NCBI GenBank assembly: GCA_020891255.1
Contig: BQFW01000013.1
Coordinates: 1,922,001-1,986,000 of the forward strand
Origin: Entomortierella parvispora E1425
Lineage: Eukaryota > Fungi > Mortierellomycota
DNA length: 64,000 nucleotides
Reading direction: 5' to 3'
The position numbers and the translations under genes are program-made. Position 1 is the stretch's first letter, and each line of letters starts with the position of its first letter. Positions 3,867-64,000 of this stretch are shown piece by piece. The notes beneath the pieces were generated by a model. The model saw only the letters and a list, made by a program, of their open reading frames with translations, was not told where the DNA came from and did no database searches.

Positions 3867-6800
3867 TTATTGTCCCGCCTTCAAAAAGCAAGGGATACCA
3901 TAAACTACAGACGCGGCGCCTACTAGGTACTTCAGCCTGCAAGTGTCCCTTGCACCCTTCACAGCCTCTACCAGCGACAGCCTCAAAGGGCCTTGCATTG
4001 GCACATCCGCTACGATGCCACCAGCGATCGTTGAGTTTGCAGCGCTTAGGGAGGAGCTGCGAGCTTGTTCAACCTCGTTCGTTGCGCGTCCGTCCCGGTT
4101 CGAATCCAGTCCCCAAAGAGTAAACATGGACTTGCTGAATCGATCCAAGTCCCGGTCTGTCACGTCCCAGAGGTTAGCCACTAACGTGGGACTTCCAGCA
4201 AGAAGGTAGTGAATCACAGAGCCAGAGGGATCAAATTCGCCTTTGCCTTTCAGCGATCCAGAGCTGCAGCCAAGAAGCAGGGCCACGGCACAGTTGCCTA
4301 CACCCCGAATTTGCTGCGACCGAATGTACTGCTCTCCGCCAGAGTGACCAAAGTAGCTATAGAAGGTGCGGAGGTAAAAGGTGGTGTCACTATAAGTAAA
4401 TGCATGCATATTTAGCACGGTAGAAACCCGCAGGGTTGCAACCTACACATAGAGCTCATGCTGGGACAGTCCTCGTTCACATTCCAGGCTCATTGGCTCC
4501 CGTCCAATAACACCCTCCCACCCCTGCTGACTCTCCACATATTCCTTGAATTCTGCCTCCGTGTTCTTAAGATCGCCTCCAGGGTTGAGAACGTAAAACG
4601 TTTTCTTTGGGTCCACTTCGACATCCTTCCAAGGGACGGACAAAGTCAAAGCTGTTGGGTCCATGTCGATCTGTCTCTGCCATTGACTTCCTCCCATTGA
4701 CGATCCGATTGCATGTCTCTGTTGCAGGATACGATCCCGAAGCATCCAAATGGACGGCATCCTTGACACTGCCTCATCCCTCAAAACAGGGCAGGACTCC
4801 CATGGGAAGACCTGTAAATGTTTGTCGAGGATGAGGATGACATGGGCACCGTCATCAAAGCCGCCATTGTGGGCGGCAGCTTCAACTTCCCAGTATTGTC
4901 GAATGGCTTCATCAATTCTTGAGGCAATCCACTCAAATTTGCCTTCTGTATACTCGACGGACGACTGCATTGGTGAGGAATCAGGGGATGAGCATGCGGT
5001 GCCCTTGAGGAGGTAGGCGTCCATAAGCAAGTATATAATATCCTTGATCTCTGTCAAGGACGGCTTGTCTCCTAGGTTGAGGAATACCGCGCATAGATCG
5101 ATGTTGATTTCCAAGTGAAAGTCTGAACTTGATTGAGTCTTGACAGCCTCGAACATGATGGCTTCCAGGGAACTCTTGAATGCCCAGAGGTTCTTCTCTT
5201 GTGCAGGCGTATTGTGAGACTGAATAAGTCCTTTCAAACCGCAAAGCCATTGATCCTCCATGCTGTCCAACAGTTGACGTAACCGGTCATTCAGGTGCTG
5301 CCTTCGACTCCACCACTCTGCCTTCTCCTGCAGGGTCAACTCTGGATTCTGTGTTGATTCATGTTGTTTTCCATTGCCTGACACGGATGAAGTTACAGAC
5401 AGTGTTTCCTGACTTTCTTTCAATATATCCTGTAACTCGTCGTAGGCTTCCTTGAAGGAGAGGTAGTGCACACTGTCACCTCCATTAGGATTATTCAATC
5501 CGAGATTCGATTCGTCGCTCTCACGAAGCATGATGCGATTGAGAGGCAAGCGAATGACAATGGGCATGGCCTTTGCTCGCAGTCGTGTTACCAATAGGCA
5601 GTCGTTTTCAACATCCATCGACATGGAGACAACAACCCAATTGGAAGGGATGATGTCCACAACTTCCTCTTGGAATCCGCCGCGTCTCTCCTCCAACGAC
5701 GCATCACGAGCGTACGCGTCGTCCAGAATCTCCAGAAGCGGCCGCTCGTTACCCTTTGAGGTGGAGGGACGGAGGGCGTCATGACGGGACAGGAATTCCC
5801 GTTTGCCACGTCGGGTTTGCAAGTCGCTGGGCTTCATCCCGACCTCCAAAATGTCGAAGTTGGTTTCGTCGACTTCAGACATATCCAAATCCATTAATTC
5901 CGCAGAGTCGCTTGCCTTTAGTAGCCTCATGTTCAAGGGTCGGGGCTTCTGCAGAATATGGCCTCCAAAATTGTCTGGCCTATGCAAGCCTGTTGTAGGA
6001 GCCTTCAGGAGTTTGCTAGGACAGATATCTTGAGGCCAAGACTGGTCTCCCCGCGAAAGGGCCGGGTTCAGCTTGTGCTTGATCAAGCCGCGCATCTCTC
6101 GCCGCTGTGTGATCGCCTTTGCCATTTCAAGGTTGAACGCGGCGTTAATAGCGGCTGCCCAAGGCCCTCCCAAAGACTTGGTCTCCAAAAGTATACTGGA
6201 TTCCATCAAGTCTAGTTGAGATTGCCACGTACAAATATCGGCCACTACATGGGGCGGGTTTGTATCAAGTGAAAGACGGTAGGCCTGCTTCAGGTGACTC
6301 TTGGCCTCATAGATTACTTCCAAGAACTTGTCGGACGACTGCGCAACCTCAACCCCACTTGACTCTCGCAGTCCGTTGGCCACAGGACTAAGTAGCGCCG
6401 CCTGACGTGCTGATCGGCGCCGAGCGGTTTTCGTCATTCGAACTGAGGGTGATAGATCCTGAGCATCTGGAAAGAGAAATGCTCGACTGGCATGCATGCT
6501 GGCAGAAGGAATAGGCGTCTTCTCGAGAAGACCCACTGATAGGACAGACTCTGGCAGCATATGGTATACAACATGGACAGACATCAGATCCTTCAGATAC
6601 ATCATCAACAGCTTTGCCATGGCCGTGTGGTATTCCGCAGAGGTAAGTGCAACGGGGTCCTGTTTCCTTGCTTTTTCCACCATGTCCATGGCTCCAGGCT
6701 CACCCATCTCGCCCATCAACAGGCCCATTCGATATCCCAATGATGCCTTCATTTCGCTGAGAGCAAGACACTCAAGATCTCCCTGATCTGGAGTCATTGA

Positions 6801-44933: not shown

Positions 44934-45449
44934 TGTGGTGTAGTAGATACAGATCACACATTCGTAGAAGTCAGTTTAGATACCCTTAAAAGATTGCGTT
45001 AATATAATTTCGTGTTCAGAGCAGTAATTGCTCTGGGTCGCTTCCTTCCCTACTTTTTCGTTTGCCTTTGTTTGATCGTTACAGAACACATACACATTCC
45101 CCCCCCCCACTTCCTGCCCGATATCCCCTTTGCAGCAGCAGCAAGATCGACGCCTTAATTCCGATTGCTGAGACTATTAGTATCTAGTCTAACCTCCTCC
45201 CCCCCCCCCCCCCCTTTACCTTTGGATATCACAGACCCTGTTCTGCCGATCAAGCTTGCCTTCGTTCAAGTCTTGAGCTTCCACCCGACTGAGATCTTTA
45301 TTGATATTTGGTTCACACAGTTTAGACAGTGAGATCCTGCAACGTCTATCCTCCCCCTCGCAAGCAATCCCCTTTCCCTAGATCACTTGTGACCAGCCCC
45401 TCTCTCCTTGAGCTACGACCGATCCCCAACCCATTGTAGCAACACCACA
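44934..45449. mobile_element. LTR-like segment F (516 bp, solo or recombinant)
   Basis: Perfect 8-bp terminal inverted repeat TGTGGTGT...ACACCACA with no coding content. The right end joins directly to family A integrase sequence. The flanks (CTCGC / ACGGA) do not form a TSD. Confidence 0.65.
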
Positions 45450-48400
45450 ACGGAAGGAGCTGGTCCCAGTTAGACTGCTTGTTGTCAATAAACGCTCTCA
45501 ACATAGTCTTCAGCGTCTTGTTCATAACCTCTGTCTGCCCATCCGTCTGTGGGTGGTAGGCGGTTGACAGTGCAAGTTTGACATCCATTAGCCTGTGCAA
45601 CTCTTGCCAGAATCTACTAGTGAATCGAGTGTCGCGGTCCGAGATGATGGATGTTGGTGTGCCATGCAGCTTGAAGATGTTGTTAAAAAACTGGTGGGCG
45701 ACGTCGACGGCTGTGGCAGAGGTAGTACTGGGAACGAAGTGAGCTTGTTTGCTGAGCTTGTCGACAAACACTGTGATGGCGTCAAAATTTCTAGCTGTGG
45801 GCGGAAGAGGGCCGATGAAGTCCATGGTGAGGTTGCAAGAGTCCAGCTGGTCGATCCTGGGAGTCCTTGTTCCTTTGACACTTCTCGCAGGTTGCTACAT
45901 ACTGCTGGGTATCCTTGGCGATGTGGGGCCAATATACGAAACGGCGCAGGTTGTCGTAAGTCTTCTGAAAACCAAAGTGTCCAGCAGTGGCGGATCGGGG
46001 AGTGCCGAGGGATGGCCAGGGTGGTTGCTCCACGTCGGGTAAAGTAGAGGAGGTTGTTCTGGAATGAATATCCATTGGCAACCTTCCCATGCAGGCAATC
46101 CTTGTAGATGGGTCCAAGTCGAGGATCGTCGTTGTAGTCCTGGACAAGCTGGTCACGGACGTCCGGGGACAGGGAGACGCTTAGGTTGTATAGCTCAACA
46201 GGGTCAGGCTCGCGGTAGTCCGGTCGTCGGGAGAGAGCGTCTGGGACGATGTTGTAAAGTCAAAGTCGTATTCCTGAAGCAACTCCATCCAGCGAGCCTG
46301 TCGACGAGTGAGTTTGGGCTGTGTGGGAAAGTGGCGCCAAGTGCGGAGCGCATGGATGACAGCCAACAGTTCCTGCTCATGGACAGGGTAGTTCCGCTCA
46401 GCTGACTGCATTTTCCTGGAAGTGAATGCGATGGGATGGGTATTCCCTTCCCGGTCAGTCTGCAGCAGCACTGCACCGATGGCGAAACCGGATGCATCTG
46501 TTTCGACAAAGGTGAGAGATCGGGGTCGAAGATGCGGAGGACGGGGGCGGAGCAGATGGCGCGTTTGAGCTGAAGGAATGCAGATTGTTGTTCGTCGGTC
46601 CATTTGAAGGGAGTGTTGTTGGCGAGGAGGGAAGAGAGAGGGAGGGCAATCCCTGCAAAGCCCGATACGTACTGTTGATAAAATTGCGCAAGCCCCAAAA
46701 ATTGCTGGACGTCCTTTGTGCTCTTGGGGGTGGGCCAGTCACTGATGGCTTTGCTGAGCCCGGCCGATGTTTTGATCCCGTCCTTCGTGATGGTGTGGCC
46801 CAAAAATTCAGTTTCGTCTTGCATGAAGGAGCACTTGCTCAATTTCGCGTACAGACCATTCTTGCGGAGGAGAGCCAGGACGCTTCGGAGATGCTGCAGG
46901 TGTTCTTTCTTTGTCTTGGAGTAGATCAACAGATCGTCGAGATACACGACAACCCATTTGTCCAAGACTGGATCGAGCACTCGCAACATCATATTGGAGA
47001 ACGAAGCAGGAGCGTTAGTAAGGCCAAAGGGAACAACAGGGAACAACATTGAACTCAAAGTGACCATAGCGACAACGGAAGGCAGTCTTGTGTGTGTGTG
47101 GTTCAAAGATACGCTGCTGATGATAACCGGATAACAAGTCCAACTTGGAGTAATAGCGTGCTCCACGGAAGCGGTCAAGTAGCTCGTCGATACGGGGCAA
47201 CGGGTGTCTGTTCTTCCTGGTGATCTTGTTGAGGCCACGGTAGTCGACGCACATTCGGAGTGTGCCGTCCTTCTTCCGCACAAAGAGCACGGGGGCGCCA
47301 TAGGGAGAGGTACTGGGCTTGATAAAACCTGCTGCTAGCAATTGGTCCAGTTGTTTGCGAAGTTCGTCAAGCTCGGCGATTGAAAGTCTAATGACAGGGC
47401 GGAAGGGTGGGTCGGCTGTCGGGTCGGTCTCGATCTTCATAGCATCACCACGGTCTGGGGGCAGGCCGTCCGGGAGTTTCTCCGGAAAGACATCAGCGAA
47501 CTCTTCCATGACAATGGACCGCACCTCTGGGGTCATATCGGGAATTGTACGCGGTTGGTCAGTTTCTTCAGAGGGCTCTGGGGTGTTGCGAATAAGGGCC
47601 AGGAACACCTCCGAGCCGGGCAGGGTTGCCATGGAATGAAAGTGCATGTGTGTGAGGAGGAGTCCTTTGGTGCGGCTTTGGATGTGATCGGCCTTGAAGC
47701 CGCGGCAGCTCCATTTGAACATCGATTCCATTGTGAGTGAAATGAAGATCGTTGGTGCGCCAATTGATGCAAGGGTTAACTTTGGTGAGCCAGGGTTTGC
47801 CAAGGATGAGGTCGTACTTGTTGAGAGGATAGAGAATAGGGTTGAGCGAATCGGAGTAGTCGCTGCGGTTGAGGGTGATGGGGACGGTGTGTGATGTGAG
47901 GGAGGAAGAGCCATTGGGGAGGAGGATGGGGATGGGCAAGCATTCAGTGCGGAGGAGCTGGTGTCGCTTTTGAAAAGACGAACTGATAATATTACCTTCT
48001 GCACCACCATCAATCAGGATTCTGGCAGCGTGGCCATTGACAGAACCGATGAAAGTGAGCAGTTGGCTCTCTGCCTTTTGGACAGTGAATTCGTGTAGGC
48101 GAATCGCACGACGCTTCAACTTCTTCAACTGACTTTTTGGACAGAGGTACACTAGGTGCCGGCGGTACAGCGAGAGGGTCCGGTTCATCTGTATCGGAGG
48201 ATCTAGGTAGAGGAGCGGACAGGGCAACTGGAGCGGGCGAGGCAACAGGTTTTTTGGTTTGGTTTTGGTTTCGGTCCGATAGAACAACCAGAGCATCGTG
48301 GATGTGAGTTCGCTTGTCATGATTGGAGTCATGTTTCTGAGGTGTAGAATCAAGTGAAGTTTTATTTGAGGTACTTAGCTCAGGGTTGTTGGCTACAGTT

Positions 48401-48856
48401 TCGACAACTGGGGTCCGGACCGACCCTAGTTGCCGGAGGCTTTTCCCGAATCAGGGGATTCACCCGCGGTTACTTGATTAATTCCTCGGCTGCCGTTGCC
48501 GTACTTGGGGCAATTGGGACTGATTGAAAAGTATATGGCACACGGAGTCAGTGAGAATAAGAGAGGGATCTCTGTTTTATTGAACCGGTCAGGATATTAT
48601 CCTGACCGTTGCCTCCGTGACTGTGCCTTGCTGCCAGCAGCATCATTTGCCGCTGCGCCACCAAATTATGCGACAGAACTTCCCCTCCCATGGAGAGCGA
48701 AGCGCGGGTTGACACTGCTGGTCAGTGAGAGGGTAAAAAATAAAACCTCTATGAAAATGTTATGGTTGAGGAAAAGTGAAAAACCTCTTGTCTTTGAGGA
48801 AAACCATGTGGTAAAAAACCTCTTTGCCTGTTAGGTCTTCTTTGCGTAGTAGCGTT

Positions 48857-51800
48857 TTAGTTCCTCGTTCTCGTTTGGTATCTCTTCGATCTTTGATCCT
48901 GTGGTCGCTTATTTTCTTTGAGAAGTTGCCAGTATTCTCTGATACATTGTTTTTCAATAAAGTTTTCTTCAGGTTCCCAAGTGTAGTCATCTTTGGAGTA
49001 GCCAGCCCATTTTGCTTTGTATTCCCACTCCCCCCTTTCGAGAAGGATGAGGACGGTGGTCGAGAATGTACTCGATCTCGAATATGGGCAGCGTATTTAA
49101 ATCCTCGAGTACGAGTTTGAGCTGGGATGGGGCATAGTTGCGACTGAGCGACTCGCCTGTACCATCTCTGAGCTCATAAGATCCACCGGTCGTGCGGCGC
49201 ACTACTGTGTACGGGCCTTCATACCGTGGCGTAAGTTTATTACCGCGGATGGGATCAAGTGTCATGACTTTTGCGCCATCAGGGAATTCATTATGCAGAA
49301 CTGTGGCATTGAATCGGGCGATCATTTTCTTTTGAGTCTCTTCTGATTTCTTGTCAATCGCTGGAAAGACAATTTCAGTCATGTATGCGAGACGATCACA
49401 GAGCTGCTTGTGGGTCATGACGTTCTTGGTAGATTTGGAGTAATTTTGGAAGCCATTGGCCTTGCGAGCGAAGAAGAGAGAGAACGGTGATGAATTATGG
49501 AGAGCAACGATTCTTGTATTCATTGCAAGCTGTGCCATGGGTACATGAAGGTCCCAAGTATCTTGTTTCTGATGATGTTCTTTCTTGAGGATGTCGACTG
49601 CGACTTTGACATGTCGTTCAGCAACGCCGTTTCCTCGAGGGTGATACGGCGTAAGTAGCCGGTGGTCAACGTTAAATTCAGAGGTCATTGCAAGCATGAC
49701 TTGGTTCACAAATTCCCTGCCGTTATCGGATTGTAAAACGCGAGGAAAGCCAACGGTACAAAATATATCAAACAGGGCTTTAGCGACAGTGTTTGCTTGT
49801 TTATCAGGGAGCGCTCTTAAGAAGACGAAGCGTGTGCATACGTCGACTACGATAAGAAGGATTTCATTGCCTTTCTTTGAGAGTTTGAACGGTCCCGCTA
49901 AATCCATAGCCATATGATCTCCTGGCAGGTTTGCGTGGATAGCTTTTAATGGATGATAGCCTTTGATACTAATATTGTACTTCTGACATTCCGAGCATTT
50001 CTTAACCCAATTCAAGCAGTCATCTGTGAGATGGGGCCATGTGTATTGTTCCGCATGTATAGACCGGACCATTGCATTCGCTCCAAGGTGGCCGAGGGCG
50101 TGGGTTTTGTACAATATATCGTCCTGCTTCTTTTTGCCATGAACGACTTCTAACATTGTGTCTTTGTTTTGCATGATGTGCATGTAAGCGTTGACTATGT
50201 GCCCATGGTTGGAGTCGTAGCGAGTCTGGATGGAGGCTGGGAACAGTCTAGACAAGTGATCTGGCAACACATTCATCACTCCAGGTCGGTATTCGACCGT
50301 AAAGTCATAACTCAGGATTGTTTCATGCCAGCCAGTGAGCATGGAGTTTAACTCTTTCTGCGAGTGAATGAACGTAAGTGCTCGATGATCTGTATACAGT
50401 GTAAAGTGTCTTCCCCAGAGGTAATAGTGGAATTTCGTGAGTGCAAACACGATTCCTAGCAATTCTTTTTGTGTGGCTGAATACCGTCGTTCTCTGTCTT
50501 GTAGAGAGCGTGCCATGAAGGATATGTATCTGTTCTCCCATTTTTTCTTGGATTCATTCCTGACTTTCTGGTAAAGGACCGATGCAATGCCTACGTTGGA
50601 TGCGTCAGTGGCGACGTAGAACGGCAGACCGAAGTCAGGGAAGTGCAAGATTGGTGCATGGCTTAGCAGTTTCTTGAATGTATTGAAAGCATCGAGTTCG
50701 TCTGCATTGAGTTTGAACACTTTTGTTTCATGCCTCAACTTATCCAATGGCGCTGCCAACGTACTGAACAGCGGGATGAATTCTCGAAAGAAATTAAATG
50801 TGCCCATGTAGGACTGAATCTGATTGCCTGTGGTTGGTGGAACCCACTGGTCGATATTGGCTAGCTTGGTAGGATCTACCCGTTTGCCAGCCAAGTCAAT
50901 GACAAAGCCGAGAAGTACAATCTGTGTTGCGAAGAAGTGTGATTTTTCTGGGTTGATAATAAGCTTTGCTTCTGTTAGGCGTTCGATTACACACTTGACG
51001 TGCGCTGCATGCTCTTCCTTGGTCTTGGAGAAAATAACGATGTCGTCAATGAACACCAGGACAAAGGGCAAGTCCCCCAAGATGCGTGTCATTCCGCGTT
51101 GGAATATGCTTGACAGTGGCTTAAGTCCGAATGGAGCTCGTCGGAACATATATTGAGTTCCTCGGTGCATGAATGCAGTGAGTGGTTGATGTCCTGCTTC
51201 GATAGGTAACCGGTGATATGCTTGCGTCAAATCGAGCGTTGTATAAATCATGTGGCCACCTATCTGTTGTAAGATGTCCGATATTAATGGTACTGGATGG
51301 TTGTCATCCTTTAATAATTTGTTCAGAGGACGTGGGTCTAGGCAAACCCGCCATTTCGTTTTATTGCCGAGGAGATCTTTCTTGGCCGCGAGAGTTAGCG
51401 TGTTATTGTGCCGATTGTTGGCCGGAGCAAGTGTGATAACTCCATCTTTAAGCCATTTGTCAACTTGTTCGTCGAAAATATGCTGTTGCTGTTCAGCAAA
51501 CGTCCTTGGTCTGCGATAAATAGTCGTGCCCTCAGGAACATCCAAGAACACGTGCATCTCTGGTAGAGTGCAGTAGCTGTCTAGCGGTATCTGTGCGTTG
51601 TCCTTTATCGAGTCTTGGATTTCACTCATGAATTGTGCTTTGAGTTTCTTGAACTTGTCAGTAAGTTCTTCGATTGGTGTTTCCAATGGTAACACGGATG
51701 GCTTTTCATCTGGTGTTGGCGTTGGCAGAGTCTGTGCGTTTGCTCGTCCGTCTGCAATGCCTCCGATTGAGAACCCTAGTTTGTTAAATAGGTCCATGCC

Positions 51801-52190
51801 AATGACAAATGGGTATTGTAGGTCAAACAGTTCAAATGAGGCGAGAAGCGAATGTTCATTGCATTCTACTTCTATATGTTCTGTTACTCCTGTTCTTGCT
51901 ACATGCATTTTCTTGTGCCCGAGGAAGATGTTTCCCCGTGCTTTGCTGACCTCAATTTTCAGAGCTTCTACTAATGACTTGTCTATGAATGACTTCGTGG
52001 CTCCAGAATCAATTAGTGCTTCAAATTGAAGGCCTTCGAAGTAGATCGGTACTACAAGTCTCTTGTCATTGTCGTTCTGGTCACCCATTTCATTGTATAT
52101 AAGTGTTTCAAACATGTGTGATTGCTCATCGTTTATTGTCATGTGCTCCTGTGGTATGTCTTGTGACATTCTACTTTCCCTCCCCCGCAT
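48857..52190 (-). CDS. Element B Pol (PR-RT-RH-IN-chromodomain), with one extra G in the chromodomain
   Basis: ALIDSGAT, VFIDD, ATDAS, HALGH..CSEC, AMDLAGPF, LQSDNGREF, RYEGPY. Removing one base from the C6 run at 49030-49035 restores chromodomain EIEYILDHR..GEWEYKAKWAGYSKDDYTWEPEENF, ending at TAA 48857-48859. Confidence 0.92.
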
Positions 52191-53982
52191 GTGCCAGGAC
52201 TGAATCTGTGGAGTGAACAGACTCTATGAATTCTTTATCTGACACTGGCGACATGTCTCTAGTCTGAGAGGAGTAGGACGCAAGAGTGAGTGCGTTGAAG
52301 TTGATATCAAGATCGTGGTATGTTTGCCACACATTTTTACGAGAGCGTAGTATATGAAGAGGGTCCTTACTGTAATTGCGCTCACGAGAGTTGTGGCTAT
52401 CCCTGTTGTCTCTGCGCTGGCGATTGTCAGCTTGATATGGCCCGAAGCGGCTTGATCCGCGGTGGGAACGGTCTTGTCGATCGTCTGAGTTGTGTGAGCT
52501 ACGCTCCGAGTGTTCATTGCGTCGTCGTTCGTCGTTCTGGCGCGCACGGCAGGCGTCCTTCTTATGGCCTAGCTTGTTGCAGTAGTCGCAGCTGATATGG
52601 TCCTTGGAAACGTGGTTGCCGTTCTTGTTACATTTATCACACCACATCTGCTTCGACTCAGCCTTGGCGGCGTGAGAGTTGGTGGTGGGCATTACTGGAG
52701 CGCTAAAGTTTTCGCGAGCTCCAGCTGGTCCTGTTAGCTTGCCCAGTGCGATGCAAAAATCAGCGATAGCAATTGGAGTGTCTGGCACTGATGTTGCTTG
52801 TGGGTTGTCCAGTACGTATTGCGATTGGAATCGCGTGTTGACTGTGTCCATTTCAGATGATGCAAGTCCTTGTCGGAGCAGAGTCAAAACCACATCGTTG
52901 TTGTCTTGTACTCGGAATAGCTTTGTAGCTCTTGCGATCCGATGAGCGTAGTGACTATATGGCTCTCCTGCGAGTCGTCCAAATTTGGTGAGCGTGGTAA
53001 CAGCGTTTTCTCGCTCTTCGATTGTTAAACATGTCTCGAAGAACGTCCTCTCGAGATAGTCCACTGTCAGCACCTCCTTGGGTGCCTTGAACTTCTCTTT
53101 CAGATTGGCATGAAAGTGGTCGTTGTGGACCAGGTACAGGAGGTATTTGTCTCCATGACTTCCTATGATTTGCTCCCCCACATACGGCGCGATTTCTCGT
53201 TCGAAGTGCGCCCACCAGTCGTATGCCGATAGGGATCCTGATGATCCGAATCGAAGCCATGTGGATAGAGGCTTGACAGGAAATCCTGCCTCAGATCGCG
53301 CTTGTGGAGCATGGTTGCTTGCGCTTCGATCCTGCTCTTGATAACGGTCTACGGTGGACTGATTTGGATATGCCCATTGTGCTGGTACAGGGCGGCGAGC
53401 TGCGTGAAGAGCATTGTATGTTTGCTCCATACTGCTGAGGAAGTCCTCGTTGCGCTTATGTTCTTCCTCCATCTTGTCTGTTTCCGGTGTGAGGTCCATG
53501 GGAGCTGTACCGGCATGGGTGACTCTTTTGTTACGTGAGATATGTAAAAGGAGTCTTACATTGGTGAGCCGAGTAGCTTCCATCTGTGCGTACGTTGCCG
53601 CAATGTCTGCCTCTATTTCCGCATCTGTTATGTCAGGCAGGGCAGTATGGGTAGGTACCGCCAAGGCTCTGGTGATTGATACGACCGATGTAGGACTATC
53701 CTTTCTTGGAATAGATGGCAACTGTGACGGTGGTAGTCCTTCAAACGTCAGTCCACTTCTGGTGCCAGAGCTGGTGGATGGAATGGTTTCCTCGTCCACA
53801 TCCATCTCTTCTGTGATGGATCCTTCGTGTGTGGCTACAGTGGCCAAGTCTCCGCCATTGTTGGTGGGTTCTCCAGAGTTGGAGGCAGTGGCGCGCGCGT
53901 TGGCGGCTTGTGCAACAGGTATAACAACTGCAGCGACTCTGCTCCGAATTGGTTTGTTGTTGTTGAGATTCACTTTGCCCAT
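52171..53982 (-). CDS. Element B Gag (two zinc-knuckle-like motifs)
   Basis: 603-aa ORF containing CDKCNKNGNHVSKDH followed by CDYCNKLGHKKDAC. Confidence 0.9.
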   Translation of the reverse strand: MGKVNLNNNKPIRSRVAAVVIPVAQAANARATASNSGEPTNNGGDLATVATHEGSITEEMDVDEETIPSTSSGTRSGLTFEGLPPSQLPSIPRKDSPTSVVSITRALAVPTHTALPDITDAEIEADIAATYAQMEATRLTNVRLLLHISRNKRVTHAGTAPMDLTPETDKMEEEHKRNEDFLSSMEQTYNALHAARRPVPAQWAYPNQSTVDRYQEQDRSASNHAPQARSEAGFPVKPLSTWLRFGSSGSLSAYDWWAHFEREIAPYVGEQIIGSHGDKYLLYLVHNDHFHANLKEKFKAPKEVLTVDYLERTFFETCLTIEERENAVTTLTKFGRLAGEPYSHYAHRIARATKLFRVQDNNDVVLTLLRQGLASSEMDTVNTRFQSQYVLDNPQATSVPDTPIAIADFCIALGKLTGPAGARENFSAPVMPTTNSHAAKAESKQMWCDKCNKNGNHVSKDHISCDYCNKLGHKKDACRARQNDERRRNEHSERSSHNSDDRQDRSHRGSSRFGPYQADNRQRRDNRDSHNSRERNYSKDPLHILRSRKNVWQTYHDLDINFNALTLASYSSQTRDMSPVSDKEFIESVHSTDSVLAHAGEGK

Positions 53983-55587
53983 GTCGCGAAAAATTTTTCA
54001 AAGCTGAATTGAGTTAATGCCGGAATGAACTGAATGTCGAAAAAGTTCACCAAAAGTCCATGAGCGGTGGCTTGCGTGCAGTAAGTGGTGTTTTGGTAAC
54101 TTTCAAGGGTCCTGAAAGCGATGCTGTGTTCCGTTTAGATGGATGGGTCGGATTGACGGGTGAATTGGCGTTCCAAAGTTGATCTCAGTTAAATCGAGTG
54201 GAATTAACTTGCGGAATGTGAGATGCAGGTCAATGCTGGTGAATGTCGTCGCAGACAGTGAAGAAATGCTGTTGATCGGTCGAGTGCTGACGAGTGCGGT
54301 TGAATGGAGGTGAATGCCGGTTGTGAATGTCGGTTATGTTCCTGATCCTGCGAGATCTTCTTCTCTTCACTGAAAAAAAATGAAAAGTATATGGCACACG
54401 GAGTCAGTGAGAATAAGAGAGGGATCTCTGTTTTATTGAACCGGTCAGGATATTATCCTGACCGTTGCCTCCGTGACTGTGCCTTGCTGCCAGCAGCATC
54501 ATTTGCCGCTGCGCCACCAAATTATGCGACACTGATGTGACCCAATTCGCGGCAGCGGAAGCAGCCACCGTTACGTACAAGGTACTCTCGGTCGGCGGCG
54601 GTCAGGGGTGCGGGGCGATCTCGAGAAGGGTTGTTAGTACCGTTGGTGGGGCGGTTCTGTAAGGAGCGGTGAAGGGTGCCGAGTTGCTTGTGGATATTGT
54701 TGAGTTGGATATGAATATTGTCCACCTCCATTGCGTTGGGGTCGGTGATACCAGCAGAGGATCCCGAGGCAGCCAGTGCTTTGGCACCGAGTGATGGGTC
54801 TCCAGTGTGGAAGATACGACCGAACTCCTCCGCGGCCTTGAAGAGTCTGGGCAGATCTATGGTGTCGTTGCCTGCATTAACAATGGCCACTTCCAGCATC
54901 TGGCGAAGCTGAGTAGGTGCACCACTGAGAAAGGCAGTACGGATAGTATCGTTGAGAACTGTGTTGTCGACGTAGTAAGACTGGAGGAGTAGGTGGTATT
55001 CACGGGCTTTGATAATATAGGCCATGACGTTGGAGATGTTCAGTGGCAGTGTCATTTTCATTTGCATTGTGAGGGCGAGAATGTGCTCCTTAAACTTCGC
55101 AGGGCTGAACTCGGCGGCAAGGAGCTCGCTGAAATCCGGGAATGAGGTGTCGGATGGCTTGTTTAAGAGTGCCCACCAGCCGATAACCTCATCGCCGGCA
55201 AAGGCAAGGGTAACCCCGACCTTGCGAGATTCGGCAATTCCAGCGCCATCGAAGAAAAAGGTCATGCGTTTCAGAAAACCGAGAACAGAGAATCCGTCGC
55301 GCTTGCCGTTGAACGGTGTTGGATGAGGGAATTTGAATGACGGTGTCGCGGAGTCCATGTTGGGTGAATTGTCGAGGGAGAGTTGATCGAAGAGGGATAC
55401 GAGGGGGTCCAGGGTGTGAGTGTGTCGGAGGGTCAGTGGGTCAGTGAGGTCAGTGGATCGAAAACCTTTGCTACCATGCAATAGGAGTATCGAGGGTGGA
55501 GTGGAGACAAGAAGTGAGTTTTATTATATTGCAAGTTTCTAGCTTTTGTAGGTACACATCGCGTGATGTCACCGTATTCCTGTTACA

Positions 55588-55767: not shown

Positions 55768-58472
55768 CAGCACTGTATCATCAATGAGTCTGGACGTCGT
55801 ATCGTCCCTAAAAAGGTTGCGAACATCCGCTCTTGGGCTCCACCCACTGACGGCAAGATGGTTCAACGCTATCTTGGCATGTTCAATTACTTCCGAGAGT
55901 TTATCCCTCTCTACTCCACCTTGGCTGCTCCACTAGACGAACTCCGATTTCGTAGAGGCTCGTTCGAGCTTTCACCACTTCAACTTGAATGCTTCACGCA
56001 GATCAAAGAGTTGATCAGCCGCGCACCAGTCCTCTCTTTCCCGGACTTCACTCAACCGTTCTACGTTGCTACAGACGCGTCCAATCTTGGACTTGGCACT
56101 GTCCTGTACCAACTCCAATGGCCCTGGTGACGAATCTGTGGTTAACTACATTTCATTCATGGCTCGCTCGTTAAAAAAACATGAGCGTAACTACCCTGCC
56201 TATAAGAAAGAGTTACTTGGTATAGTCTACGCCCTCAAGAAGTTTCATTACTACCTGTGGGGTCGCCACTTCACGCTGTACACAGACCACAAGCCTCTTA
56301 CTTTCATCCAGAATCAGACTGATCTACCTACAACTATTGCCAATTGGACAGAGACAATCCTCAGCCACGACTTTGAGTGTATCTATCGTCCTGGTCTGCT
56401 CAACATCATTCCTGATGCTTTATCGAGAGCATTCCCTAAGGAACTCTGGACTCACTCCTCTGAACCGTCCTCTGAACACAGAGACAAGCGTCGCAAGACA
56501 GCTGCGGTCACCACTCGTCGTGGATTCCGCCCAACAGTCCCTGAAAATAATGATCAAACTTTATCTGTCTCGTCTGAGCAATTGGGCAATAACCTCTCTG
56601 ATCCCTCAGCACCCTTCGTGCATCAGATGCAATTAGCCGAAGACGCTATGACCATCCCTAAAGAATCTGAACGATCTGATCTTCTCCAGAAGACTCATGG
56701 CGATGCTCACCTTGGAGCCAACGCCATGGTCAGCGCCCTGCATTTGCAAAAGTTAACTTGGCCAAAACTCAAAGATGCATGTCTAAACTTTATCCGAAAG
56801 TGCACGGCTTGCCAGCACTTCAACATCGCAAGAAAAGGGTACCACCCTCTCAAAGCTGTCCATGCCACCTTCCCTGGTGAACATCTAGCTATAGATCTTG
56901 CTCAATTTCAGCAGAGTTCTAACAACCACGTCTACGCCCTAGTCGTCGTTGACGTCTGCACCCGCTTTGTCTTCTTACGTCCCCTCAAGACGAAAGAGGC
57001 TTCTGTAATCGCTAGAGAGCTCTTCACGCTCTTCAGTGATATTGGCCCTCCAAAGATCGTACAGACAGACAACGGCTCGGAATTTTCTAATCTATCGTTG
57101 GACTCAGTTCTAACGCTTCTCCAAACGCAACATCGTTTGTCAACCCCTTACCACCCTCGCGGTAATGGCATTGCTGAACGACTTGTTCGCTCATCCAAGG
57201 AATTGCTGCGCAAAGTGCTCCACGGCAAAGTCCTTGACTGGGACTCGTACCTCCCAGCAGTTCAATTCTCTCTCAACACTAAAGTAGCGAGTCTACACAG
57301 TTCCACTCCATTTTCTCTATTCTATGGCCGCGCTTATTCAAGCGTCAGCAACTTCAAACAAATCAAGTCTGAACTCACTCCCGAAGATCTTGACGATCGT
57401 CTTGAGTATCTCACAAACATTGTCTTCCCCGCTATCTCTGAAAAGAGCAAAGCCAGCCAGAAACAAATGGTTGACAAGTTCAATCGCTCTCACCATATCA
57501 CAGAGTTTCCTGTTGGATCATTTGTCATGACCAAAGACATGGAAGCCACTGGCTCTCTTGATGCTACGACGGCCCTTACAAAGTTGTCGCGCGCACTTCT
57601 CATGGCACTTATACTCTGAAGGATACCACCAACACCATCCTCTCTCGCAACTTTGCACCCGAGCAATTGAAGCTCGCCCTCCGCGATGACGAAGAAGACA
57701 ACAACAGTTATGAACTCGAAAAGATCATTGGGCACCGTGATATTGCCCCCGGGGAGACGGTTTACATGGTTAAATGGAAGAACTACGATAGCTCACACAA
57801 CCAAGAGTTGCCAGAATCAGCTTTCAACTCCAAAACAATCATTCCACGCTACTATAGACAATTGCAAAAAACGAATCCTGAGCTCGTGCCCGCCAACAGG
57901 ATGCAGCCCGAACCCAAAGCTAAAATCAAGAGCACCGGTCCCGCTGCGAAAAAGAAATCTGTCACCTTCGCACAGACAACCAAGGCCGTCACGACAAGAA
58001 CAACACGCTCGACTCGACCCAGTACCAACAAATAACTCCTGTTCGAAGAATCCCGCTTCGAGGTTTTTGCACGCTTACGACCCTGGTCGTTTGAACGTTT
58101 TCCTCACCCTTTCCTTCGTACAGACATGGGTTTTTCTCATTTTCCCATTCGCACAACTTCAATTGAGGTTTATTATTTTGCCCTCTTCATTTTCTCTTCT
58201 GAGGTTTTCTTCTTTTTCTCCTCGCACAACCAAATTAATTCTTTTGAGTTTACTTCTTTCTCAAAATCTGAGGTTTTTACGTCCTTTTCCTCAACGGTCA
58301 TCCTCTCTCGAGCACCTCCCTGGACCTAAAAACTCGCCGGGGGCTTCTGTGCCGGATCAGGCCTCTGACCCTTAATTTTCAGTTGACGAAGATATATCAG
58401 CGCCTCAAGCGCTCTCTCATTGAAACAGATCTCTTCTTCCGTCTCGTCATTACTCGTACCCATACTTACTCA
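55768..58472 (+). mobile_element. 5'-truncated, frameshifted Ty3/gypsy element C (relative of B): RT end, RH, IN, chromodomain, 3' UTR, 125-bp 3' LTR (58348-58472)
   Basis: FREFIPLYSTLAAPLD (nearly the same as B), ATDAS, AIDLAQF, QTDNGSEF and chromodomain YELEKIIGHR..YMVKWKNY. Frameshifts at about 56110 and 57565. Its LTR shares CA.T.AAACAGA..TC and CCATA..CTT..CA with the B LTR, and both LTRs are preceded by TTC after a G-rich tract. Confidence 0.85.
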
Positions 58473-60142: not shown

Positions 60143-61625
60143 CGAAACTGTAGCCAACAACCCTGAGCTAAGTACCTCAAATAAAACTTCACTTGATTCT
60201 ACACCTCAGAAACATGACTCCAATCATGACAAGCGAACTCACATCCACGATGCTCTGGTTGTTCTATCGGACCGAAACCAAAACCAAACCAAAAAACCTG
60301 TTGCCTCGCCCGCTCCAGTTGCCCTGTCCGCTCCTCTACCTAGATCCTCCGATACAGATGAACCGGACCCTCTCGCTGTACCGCCGGCACCTAGTGTACC
60401 TCTGTCCAAAAGTCAGTTGAAGAAGTTGAAGCGTCGTGCGATTCGCCTACACGAATTCACTGTCCAAAAGGCAGAGAGCCAACTGCTCACTTTCATCGGT
60501 TCTGTCAATGGCCACGCTGCCAGAATCCTGATTGATGGTGGTGCAGAAGGTAATATTATCAGTTCGTCTTTTCAAAAGCGACACCAGCTCCTCCGCACTG
60601 AATGCTTGCCCATCCCCATCCTCCTCCCCAATGGCTCTTCCTCCCTCACATCACACACCGTCCCCATCACCCTCAACCGCAGCGACTACTCCGATTCGCT
60701 CAACCCTATTCTCTATCCTCTCAACAAGTACGACCTCATCCTTGGCAAACCCTGGCTCACCAAAGTTAACCCTTGCATCAATTGGCGCACCAACGATCTT
60801 CATTTCACTCACAATGGAATCGATGTCAAATGGAGCTGCCGCGGCTTCAAGGCCGATCACATCCAAAGCCGCACCAAAGGACTCCTCCTCACACACATGC
60901 ACTTTCATTCCATGGCAACCCTGCCCGGCTCGGAGGTGTTCCTGGCCCTTATTCGCAACACCCCAGAGCCCTCTGAAGAAACTGACCAACCGCGTACAAT
61001 TCCCGATATGACCCCCAGAGGTGCGGTCCATTGTCATGGAAGAGTTCGCTGATGTCTTTCCGGAGAAACTCCCGGACGGCCTGCCCCCAGACCGTGGTGA
61101 TGCTATGAAGATCGAGACCGACCCGACAGCCGACCCACCCTTCCGCCCTGTCATTAGACTTTCAATCGCCGAGCTTGACGAACTTCGCAAACAACTGGAC
61201 CAATTGCTAGCAGCAGGTTTTATCAAACCCAGTACCTCTCCCTATGGCGCCCCCGTGCTCTTTGTGCGGAAGAAGGACGGCACACTCCGAATGTGCGTCG
61301 ACTACCGTGGCCTCAACAAGATCACCAGGAAGAACAGACACCCGTTGCCCCGTATCGACGAGCTACTTGACCGCTTCCGTGGAGCACGCTATTACTCCAA
61401 GTTGGACTTGTTATCCGGTTATCATCAGCAGCGTATCTTTGAACCACACACACACAAGACTGCCTTCCGTTGTCGCTATGGTCACTTTGAGTTCAATGTT
61501 GTTCCCTTTGGCCTTACTAACGCTCCTGCTTCGTTCTCCAATATGATGTTGCGAGTGCTCGATCCAGTCTTGGACAAATGGGTTGTCGTGTATCTCGACG
61601 ATCTGTTGATCTACTCCAAGACAAA

Positions 61626-64000
61626 TGCAATAGGAGTATCGAGGGTGGAGTGGAGACAAGAAGTGAGTTTTATTATATTGCAAGTTTCTAGCTTTTGTAG
61701 GTACACATCGCGTGATGTCACCGTATTCCTGTTACACCTTCCCCTTTTAAAAAATGATACCGTGCTGCTCTTTGAAGGTTGTGACCAAGTCCATGCAGTT
61801 GTCCAAGTTGCTTACTGGGAGCCATTCGTCAGCTTCTCTGCCGTAGCCTTTGAATGACACTAGGAACTGGTGTTGTCTGCGGTAGAAGCGGTACTTTAAA
61901 ATTTCGTCCACTTCATACTCCTCTTCGCCGTCAATTACAGTGGGATCCACGGGGGCAGGAGCTCGAATGCCGAGTGACTCCGGGGACGGCAAATAGGGTC
62001 GAAAAGGTATCAACGTGGAAGACGTCATGGATTTTGTAGAATGGTGGCAGCTCGACGCGGAAGGTGACAGGTGAGTGTTGCTCCAAAAGTGTGAACGGGC
62101 CAAGGAATTGAGGTCGAAGTTTATCGGCTGGTCTGATACTGTCGGCAGGGATGGTGATATTGGTGGCACGCAGCAGGACCTTATCGCCAACCTTGTACTT
62201 GTGATCCCGTCGTCGCTTGTTTGCCTGTTGCTCCTGATGATCCTGAGCACGCTGCAGAGCATCCTGGGCCAGGGCAAGGGTGGTCGCCTGCTCAGTCAGG
62301 AAGGTATCGACAGTGGGGACTGAGCTGCTGGGTTTACCGAGGAGAGCGGTGGGGAGACGAGGGTGCTGGCCAGAGTTGAGGAAGAACGGCGAGTATCCCG
62401 TGGATGCATTGACAGCGTTGTTATAGGCGAATTCCAGTGACGGAAGGAGCTGGTCCCAGTTAGACTGCTTGTTGTCAATAAACGCTCTCAACATAGTCTT
62501 CAGCGTCTTGTTCATAACCTCTGTCTGCCCATCCGTCTGTGGGTGGTAGGCGGTTGACAGTGCAAGTTTGACATCCATTAGCCTGTGCAACTCTTGCCAG
62601 AATCTACTAGTGAATCGAGTGTCGCGGTCCGAGATGATGGATGTTGGTGTGCCATGCAGCTTAAAGATGTTGTCAAAAAACTGGTGGGCGACGTCGACGG
62701 CTGTGGCAGAGGTAGTACTGGGGACGAAGTGAGCTTGCTTGGTCAGCTTGTCGACAAACACTGTGATGGCGTCAAAATTTCTAGCTGTGGGCGGAAGAGG
62801 GCCGATGAAGTCCATGGTGACTACCTCCCAACGTTGCGAAGGAATGGGTAGCGGTTGCAAGAGTCCAGCTGGTCGATCCTGTGAGTCCTTGTTCCTTTGA
62901 CACTTCTCGCAGGTTGCTACATACTGCTGGGTATCCTTGGCGATGTGGGGCCAATATACGAAACGGCGCAGGTTGTCGTAAGTCTTTTGAAAACCAAAGT
63001 GTCCAGCAGTGGCAGAGTCGTGAGCGTCGTGCAAGAGAGTGAGGCGGATCGGGGAGTGCCGAGGGATGGCCAGGGTGGTTGCTCCACGTCGGGTAAAGTA
63101 GAGGAGGTTGTTCTGGAATGAATATCCATTGGCAACCTTCCCATCCAGGCAATCCTTGTAGATGGGTCCAAGTCGAGGATCGTCGTTGTAGTCCTGGACA
63201 AGCTGGTCACGGACGTCCGGGGACAGGGAGACGCTGAGGTTGTATAGCTCAACAGGGTCAGGCTCGCGGTAGTCCGGTCGTCGGGAGAGAGCGTCTGGGA
63301 CGATGTTGTCAACTCCTCGCTTGTACTTGAAGTCAAAGTCGTATTCCTGAAGCAACTCCATCCAGCGAGCCTGTCGACGAGTGAGTTTGGGCTGTGTGGG
63401 GAAGTGGCGGAGGGTGGCGTGGTCGGTGTGGACGCTGAACTTGGTTCCATCGAGGTAGTAGCGCCAAGTGCGGAGCGCATGGATGACAGCCAACAGTTCC
63501 TGCTCATGGACAGGGTAGTTCCGCTCAGCTGACTGCATTTTCCTGGAAGTGAATGCGATAGGATGGGTATTCCCTTCCCGGTCAGTCTGCAGCAGCACTG
63601 CACCGATGGCGAAACCGGATGCATCTGTTTCGACAAAGGTGAGAGATCAGGGTCGAAGATGCGGAGGACGGGGGCGGAGCAGATGGCGCGTTTGAGCTGA
63701 AGGAATGCAGATTGTTGTTCGTCGGTCCATTTGAAGGGAGTGTTGTTGGCGAGGAGGGAAGAGAGAGGGAGGGCAATCCCTGCAAAGCCCGATACGTACT
63801 GTTGATAAAATTGCGCAAGCCCCAAAAATTGCTGGACGTCCTTTGTGCTCTTGGGGGTGGGCCAGTCACTGATGGCTTTGCTGAGCCCGGCCGATGTTTT
63901 GATCCCGTCCTTCGTGATGGTGTGGCCCAAAAATTCAGTTTCGTCTTGCATGAAGGAGCACTTGCTCAATTTCGCGTACAGACCGTTCTTGCGGAGGAGA
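61626..64000 (-). mobile_element. Ty3/gypsy chromovirus element A3 (3' part): RT end, RH, IN, chromodomain, PPT, 3' LTR 61626-61736
   Basis: PPT AAAAGGGGAAGG directly abuts the LTR. Motifs HDSATAGH..CEKC, MDFIGPLP, ISDRDTRF, FLGPF and chromodomain [23 protein letters not shown]. Frameshifts at about 63643 and 62003. Confidence 0.95.

Follow-up and report, generated by a model that had tools for sequence, protein, structure and literature searches.

Structure of Element B

The window analysed here is a stretch of 64,000 nucleotides of Entomortierella parvispora E1425 (GCA_020891255.1, contig BQFW01000013.1, positions 1,922,001 to 1,986,000 of the forward strand). A repeat search of the window identified two 151-nt copies that were 100% identical, located at 48525-48675 and 54381-54531. 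Read on the minus strand, both copies begin with TG and end with CA, and they are flanked by the same 5-bp target duplication, ATCAG. Between them, two overlapping open reading frames were found on the minus strand, encoding proteins of 603 and 1067 aa. The first ORF (gag) had no Pfam hit. The second ORF (pol) carries protease, reverse transcriptase, RNase H and integrase in the order PR-RT-RNase H-IN. The domain order, the TG..CA LTRs and the 5-bp target duplication identify the element, named element B, as a Ty3/gypsy LTR retrotransposon. No Chromo hit was found in the last 170 aa of the B pol protein even at E <= 1, and only a weak, below-cut-off match to a Tf2-1-like SH3 domain was obtained, while nearly all relatives, including one that was 87% identical, carry PF00385 in precomputed annotation. 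The features of element B are as follows, with R, U5, the poly(A) signal and the cleavage site inferred from sequence alone.

54532..54536 (minus strand): target-site duplication ATCAG, with the other copy at 48520-48524
54381..54531 (minus strand): 5' LTR, 151 nt, TG..CA
54450..54457 (minus strand): TATA-like GATAATAT in U3, 25 nt (first base to last base) upstream of the end of AATAAA
54432..54437 (minus strand): AATAAA, inferred poly(A) signal (LTR positions 95-100), with the 3' LTR copy at 48576-48581
54405..54431 (minus strand): inferred R, 27 nt, 5' copy, ending in TCACTG, bounded by the signal and the paired word
54381..54404 (minus strand): inferred U5, 24 nt, starting with A and ending in CA
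54373..54380 (minus strand): T8 tract directly after the LTR, the proposed oligo(A)-binding half of the primer site
54367..54372 (minus strand): CAGTGA, exact complement of the R 3' end TCACTG, the proposed R-binding half of the primer site
54352..54366 (minus strand): AGAGAAGAAGATCTC, imperfect inverted copy of the rest of R, ending in GATCTC, which pairs with GAGATC at the start of R
52171..53982 (minus strand): gag ORF, 603 aa, open
48987..52190 (minus strand): pol ORF, 1067 aa, open
48679..48689 (minus strand): polypurine tract GGGAGGGGAAG, 3 nt before the 3' LTR
48525..48675 (minus strand): 3' LTR, with the inferred R at 48549-48575 and predicted cleavage and polyadenylation at or just after 48549 (48549/48548)

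The 5' LTR is followed directly by T8, CAGTGA and AGAGAAGAAGATCTC, and no TGG is present. TCACTG ends 27 nt after AATAAA and is followed by A. The LTR has no run of A longer than 4. The initial annotation had described this T8-CAGTGA junction without a tRNA primer site, and this observation was confirmed. The predicted cut at 48549/48548 and the complementarity of GAGATC in the LTR with GATCTC in the leader were also as it had stated. Two details were corrected: the distance given as 28 nt is 27 nt, and T8 is the minority length of the tract, as described below. The possibility that the T run is the polypurine tract of an oppositely oriented element was rejected, since the ORFs fix the minus strand as sense and the G-rich polypurine tract GGGAGGGGAAG lies at the other end.

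Element B is inserted into the zinc-knuckle end of the gag of another gypsy element. Two copies of a different gypsy family (pol 22-32% identical to B), located at 45448-47356 and 62054-63637 on the minus strand, share segments that are 95-99% identical and about 17 kb apart, and one of them is the element whose gag was interrupted by B. A 5'-truncated copy of a further family, family C (pol 46-57% identical to B), lies next to B at 55777-57738 on the plus strand. The full copy of family C, at locus L065 of this genome, has an insertion of about 1 kb inside pol (locus positions 5279-6290). An identical 112-nt unit (TGCAATAGG...TGTTACA) occurs twice in the window, at 55476-55587 and 61625-61736. 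One copy is followed by TGGGCGAATTGAG, which looks like a TGG-type primer site. The unit abuts RT fragments, has no matching target duplications, and is itself the target of the C insertion in L065 (duplication GTAGG).

Copies of Element B in the Genome

The genome comprises 38.9 Mb in 20 contigs. Among the near-identical B copies (loci L001-L015), the junction between the 5' LTR and the leader was found 14 times at 99-100% identity. Of these 14 readable junctions, 11 have T7 and 3, including the copy in the window, have T8. Two copies lack one GAA of the GAAGAGAAGAAG that follows the tract (window positions 54352-54380). None of the 15 3'-LTR or solo-LTR ends is followed by a T run; all of them are followed by unrelated DNA. 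The tract therefore lies outside the LTR, at the position that a primer site must occupy. A TGG-starting site within 0-5 nt of the 5' LTR, as expected of a tRNA-primed element, was absent, since T7-8 and CAGTGA follow the LTR in all 14 copies.

Copies of B, C and a third family of this genome, family E (locus L082), lie in a single nested cluster per contig. With the contigs labelled C1, C2 and so on, the clusters were located on C1 at ~1.02 Mb, C2 at ~2.18-2.22 Mb, C5 at ~1.50-1.52 Mb, C6 at ~0.42-0.46 Mb, C9 at ~0.28 Mb, C10 at ~0.75-0.77 Mb, C11 at ~0.37-0.41 Mb, C13 at ~1.97-2.02 Mb (the window), C14 at ~2.01-2.03 Mb, and C15 at ~0.62-0.63 Mb. The pattern resembles centromere-type retrotransposon islands, one per chromosome, as described for Skipper and DIRS-1 in Dictyostelium.

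To determine whether a host RNA could be the primer, such as a tRNA fragment, snRNA or other small RNA that ends in or contains TCACTG followed by A's, the genome was searched with the complement of the site. Half-tRNA priming from an internal tRNA segment is known for copia and Ty5-type elements (PMC6317226). The 13-mer occurred outside B at 6 sites, compared with 6 for the control, and no tRNA was located at those sites. The 15-mer with up to 2 mismatches showed no multi-copy host match. These searches started from the site and not from the full tRNA set of the genome. A three-copy repeat (L043, L047 and L050, at C11:287351, C14:27364 and C15:21539, respectively) contains TTGTTTACA, TCACTG, A8 and TTTATCTGCC in succession and matches the complement of the B site by 14 nt. 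Two copies lie near contig ends, no tRNA is present, and the match was judged to be chance. In addition, each family described below would need a different host RNA that happens to match its own LTR, and a host primer could not follow these family-specific changes. A host RNA primer is therefore considered very unlikely.

Junctions in Related Families

The same junction was read in twelve further families, giving 13 families including B. Two more were from this genome (C and E), and the others were from soil-metagenome and Logan contigs reached through pol homologues, from Absidia glauca (L090) and from Lichtheimia corymbifera (L105). The pol proteins of the 13 families are 31-59% identical to each other. 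The set does not include family D of this genome (59-64% identical to B) or L086 (P0022), which is truncated at its 5' end and gives only a 3' LTR. The LTR ends of E, L087 and L091 rest on one LTR only, and those of L085 and L092 rest on circularly assembled contigs.

Every family showed the same order of features. There is often a clear TATA box and, about 25-30 nt later, a hexamer that is AATAAA, ATTAAA or a near variant. A word of 4-7 nt, ending 13-27 nt after the hexamer, is followed by A. A further 24-94 nt ends in CA, which is the LTR end. After a spacer of 0-3 nt there is a tract of 5-8 T, and then the exact reverse complement of the word. The clearer TATA boxes, in families E, G, J and L, lie 32-36 nt before the end of the signal. 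No related family carries a TGG site at this position. A T5-8 tract abuts the LTR in all 13 families examined, and this is not chance. The word in the LTR and the word after the T tract are listed below for each family.

B: (T)CACTG in the LTR, CAGTG(A) after the tract
C: CGTC in the LTR, GACG after the tract
E: CGTTG in the LTR, CAACG after the tract
L085: TCGCT in the LTR, AGCGA after the tract
L087 (family G): TCATT in the LTR, AATGA after the tract
L088 (family H): TCGTT in the LTR, AACGA after the tract
L089: CCTTG in the LTR, CAAGG after the tract
L090 (Absidia, family J): TCATCAT in the LTR, ATGATGA after the tract
L091 (family K): CCTT in the LTR, AAGG after the tract
L092 (family L): CGTC in the LTR, GACG after the tract
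L105 (Lichtheimia): TCAAAGG in the LTR, CCTTTGA after the tract
L106: AAGTG in the LTR, CACTT after the tract
L107 (family O, AT-rich): TCAAAG in the LTR, CTTTGA after the tract

In three families the complement is only 4 nt. Two families have C inside the tract, CTTTTCTT in one and CTTCCTTT in a diverged copy of the other. The latter is a diverged C-like copy (gag 79% identical) at locus L071 (C7:357000-360701, locus positions ~1300-1400), in which the poly(A)-signal region is replaced by A10 and the GACG/CGTC pair is kept.

Co-Variation of the LTR Word and the Word after the Tract

To test whether the two words change together, as had been proposed with the initial annotation, each family's site was paired with the LTR of every family. 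The longest complementarity anchored at the end of the tract was taken, requiring A as the next LTR base. The test was run in a ten-family and a 13-family version and was strongly positive across the 13 families. Own-family pairings summed to 65, while random re-pairings gave 31.5 +/- 4.3 with a maximum of 57, and 0 of 200,000 reached 65. Off-diagonal matches of 5 or more occurred in 2.6% of pairs. The own-family match always ended 13-27 nt after the signal hexamer (family O: 6 nt of match at a distance of 13 nt), which is the usual geometry of a cleavage site.

Beyond the anchored word, the rest of the stretch between the signal and the word also paired better with its own leader than with other leaders. 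The summed predicted energy was -76 kcal/mol compared with -53 +/- 8 kcal/mol for permuted pairings (298 of 100,000 permutations). In B, E, L085 and L090, this pairing reaches the bases just after the signal. The leader is complementary to R over its whole inferred length, and the complementarity stops where the inferred R starts. Predicted duplexes of the site with R plus A10 had 11-14 contiguous bp and energies of -12 to -28 kcal/mol, and were on average 4.9 kcal/mol more stable than those with R plus the start of U5.

Co-variation fits equally well an intramolecular stem between the 5' R and the leader that serves another purpose, such as packaging, dimerisation or presenting the tract. In that case the U tract would bind poly(A) of any RNA as primer, or would clamp the element's own tail to circularise or stabilise the RNA, and the true primer would then be something else. 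U-rich elements that clamp poly(A) tails reportedly occur in transposon RNAs of plants and fungi (Tycowski et al. 2016). However, the tract sits exactly where a primer site must be, 0-3 nt from the LTR edge, and no other candidate site exists there. The tract and the complement are always contiguous, and the LTR word is always followed by A. There is only one U strand and it lies in the 5' leader, unlike the stem-loop with two facing U-rich strands near the RNA 3' end that is typical of ENE-like clamps. The local fold was no more stable than shuffles (z = -0.32). This explanation cannot be excluded by sequence alone but is considered unlikely.

Transcripts were also sought in sequence collections. 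A metagenome scan for a conserved R motif followed by A8 returned 12 unrelated CT-rich stretches, all DNA. Logan and JGI contigs of relatives proved to be genomic, as they carry flanking DNA or are LTR-collapsed circular permutations, and no transcript-like contigs were found. A look-up of the Lichtheimia gag found only the genome record.

Proposed Priming from the Polyadenylated 3' End

The analysis demonstrates that the sequence after the T tract pairs with the stretch lying between a poly(A)-type signal and a point at the canonical cleavage distance, that this pairing is maintained by compensatory change, that a T-only tract is conserved next to it, and that no tRNA-type site exists. It is an inference that the hexamer is the poly(A) signal, that transcription starts just after it, and that R is therefore only 13-27 nt long and ends at the paired word; the start is indicated by the TATA spacing and by the end of the leader complementarity. 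The poly(A) site, the start site and the identity of the primer, and with them every step of the mechanism below, are likewise predicted from DNA sequence and not from RNA ends.

On this reading, the only RNA in which the word is followed by a run of A's is the polyadenylated 3' end, because in the 5' copy the word is followed by one or two A's and then U5. We propose that element B and a broad clade of related Ty3/gypsy elements of early-diverging fungi have replaced the tRNA primer site with a two-part site, consisting of a T5-8 tract and the complement of the last 4-7 nt of R, which together match the 3' end of the element's own polyadenylated RNA (in B, UCACUG followed by A's). Transcription would start just after AATAAA, about 30-36 nt after a TATA box, so that the signal is absent from the 5' end and acts only in the 3' LTR. 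The RNA would be cut 13-27 nt after the signal and polyadenylated. The end of R and the first 6-8 A's of the tail would pair with the site next to U5 (11-14 contiguous bp, more with the rest of R), on the same RNA or on a co-packaged one. The unpaired remainder of the tail would be removed by a host deadenylase stalling at the duplex or by an RNase H cut like the one made by Tf1, leaving a 3'-OH at the LTR edge. In families C, L087, L088, L092 and L106, synthesis would start 1-3 nt beyond the edge, and integrase would then trim those bases. Reverse transcriptase would copy U5 and R, and the short R' would anneal to a 3' R; if this is the primer's own R, a hairpin is formed. Plus-strand strong-stop DNA would copy the A's and the adjoining R bases of the primer, re-creating the T tract and the complement in each new copy. 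This last step would explain why the site always matches the family's own R, and could explain the T7/T8 variation among otherwise identical copies, although this variation could also be slippage or assembly error.

Several points weigh against this mechanism. Co-variation proves pairing with R but not with which copy of R, and the pairing of the T run with the tail is an inference from contiguity. The tail would have to be trimmed to about the tract length by an activity that is only postulated. The boundary of the leader complementarity at the start of R follows naturally if the primer runs to the capped 5' end but needs a separate reason for a 3' primer. The C inside the tract in two families, the complement of only 4 nt in three families, the LTR ends inferred from one LTR only in three families, and the judgement of Spaller et al. 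2016 (PMC5006619) that simple poly(A) priming is unlikely for the similar Skipper tract also count against it. Tf1-type self-priming was considered as an alternative, in which the capped 5' R folds back onto its complement in the leader, RNase H cuts after the paired word, synthesis reads through the T tract, and the T's and the primer copy at the cDNA end are removed before or during integration. Self-priming from the 5' end is established for Tf1 and proposed for Tj1 (PMC4600332), and the weak SH3 match at the pol C-terminus would be consistent with it. Tf1 cDNA reportedly keeps its primer (Atwood-Moore 2006), so that extra bases beyond CA are tolerated. However, this alternative gives no role to a T-only tract conserved in 13 of 13 families, and the LTR has no A run to pair with it. 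The tract would be copied into the cDNA end, yet 15 of 15 3'-LTR or solo-LTR ends lack it. If the RNA ends at the paired word, as the signal distance suggests, priming from the 5' end would leave no R complement in strong-stop DNA for the first jump, while priming from the 3' end does leave one. The published criterion of at least 10 bp of LTR complementarity starting 0-5 bp after the LTR (PMC6317226) is also not fulfilled, since the complement starts after a 6-8 nt T tract and its perfect part is 4-7 nt. Tf1-type priming from the 5' end is considered unlikely.

The mechanism suggested in the initial annotation, priming by the element's own oligo(A) end, is partly supported by our data. It remains the best-supported explanation and is somewhat more likely than not, but it rests on inferred RNA ends. 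In the incomplete literature collection searched, no paper proposing priming by the polyadenylated 3' end of the element was found.

How LTR retroelements choose their primer is a defining step of their replication, and only two solutions are established, host tRNA (whole or half) and the Tf1-type 5' self-primer. About as likely as not, a whole clade of Ty3/gypsy elements in Mortierellomycota and Mucoromycota starts minus-strand synthesis from its own polyadenylated 3' end, trimmed to the length of a U tract, and the T-rich-tract elements Skipper and Tcn1 of amoebae and lower plants may do the same. This would be a third general priming mode for LTR retroelements, and if the same RNA is used, the first strand transfer becomes an intramolecular fold-back. 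If correct, it ties retrotransposition to tail length and deadenylation. The rule that the tract is followed by the complement of the bases at the predicted poly(A) site gives a concrete and testable answer to the unexplained T-rich tracts reported in Skipper and SM-Tcn1, and would resolve this published puzzle if confirmed. It also gives annotation software a pattern to recognise, because these elements currently score as lacking a primer site. Element B is young, intact and present in about 15 copies in a culturable, non-pathogenic fungus, so it is a practical test system.

Comparison with Known Elements

SM-Tcn1 of Selaginella is a Tcn1-like chromovirus of a plant with no tRNA or self-primer site and with a conserved thymine-rich sequence after the 5' LTR, for which the mechanism was described as unclear and no link to the poly(A) site was proposed (Novikova et al. 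2010, PMC2864245). For plant Tcn1 elements, self-priming was predicted by Neumann et al. 2019 (PMC6317226) with the criterion of at least 10 bp that the fungal elements do not fulfil.

The Skipper chromoviruses of Dictyostelia carry a polypyrimidine tract directly after the left LTR in place of the primer site (Spaller et al. 2016, PMC5006619), and a tract of this type is present in element B and the 12 further families. The authors found no complementary LTR region, left the mechanism open, thought a simple poly(A) stretch unlikely because of a C at the LTR-facing end of the tract, and knew of no other organism with the feature. In families C, H and L the same C faces the LTR and is simply a one-base spacer. 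A short LTR complement adjoining the tract co-varies in the families studied here. Both Skipper and the elements described here cluster in a few genomic islands.

In the LINE elements, target-primed reverse transcription also rests on oligo(T):poly(A) pairing, but the roles are reversed, as a T-rich DNA end primes on the RNA tail, while here the RNA tail would prime on a U tract of the template. In retroviruses with a very short R and the AAUAAA in U3 (RSV and MMTV), the signal likewise lies just upstream of the start site and acts only at the 3' end, and R is about 15-21 nt, but those viruses use tRNA primers.

Tf1, Tf2 and Tj1 (the Tf1/sushi group of chromoviruses) are also Ty3/gypsy elements of fungi that use no tRNA, have a primer site complementary to the element's own LTR-derived RNA, and need a nuclease step to create the 3'-OH. 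In Tf1, the first 11 nt of the transcript pair directly after the LTR and the 5' end is the primer (PMC4600332). In the elements described here, the complement matches the last bases of a very short inferred R and is separated from the LTR by a T5-8 tract that only a poly(A) tail can pair with, which points to the 3' end as primer.
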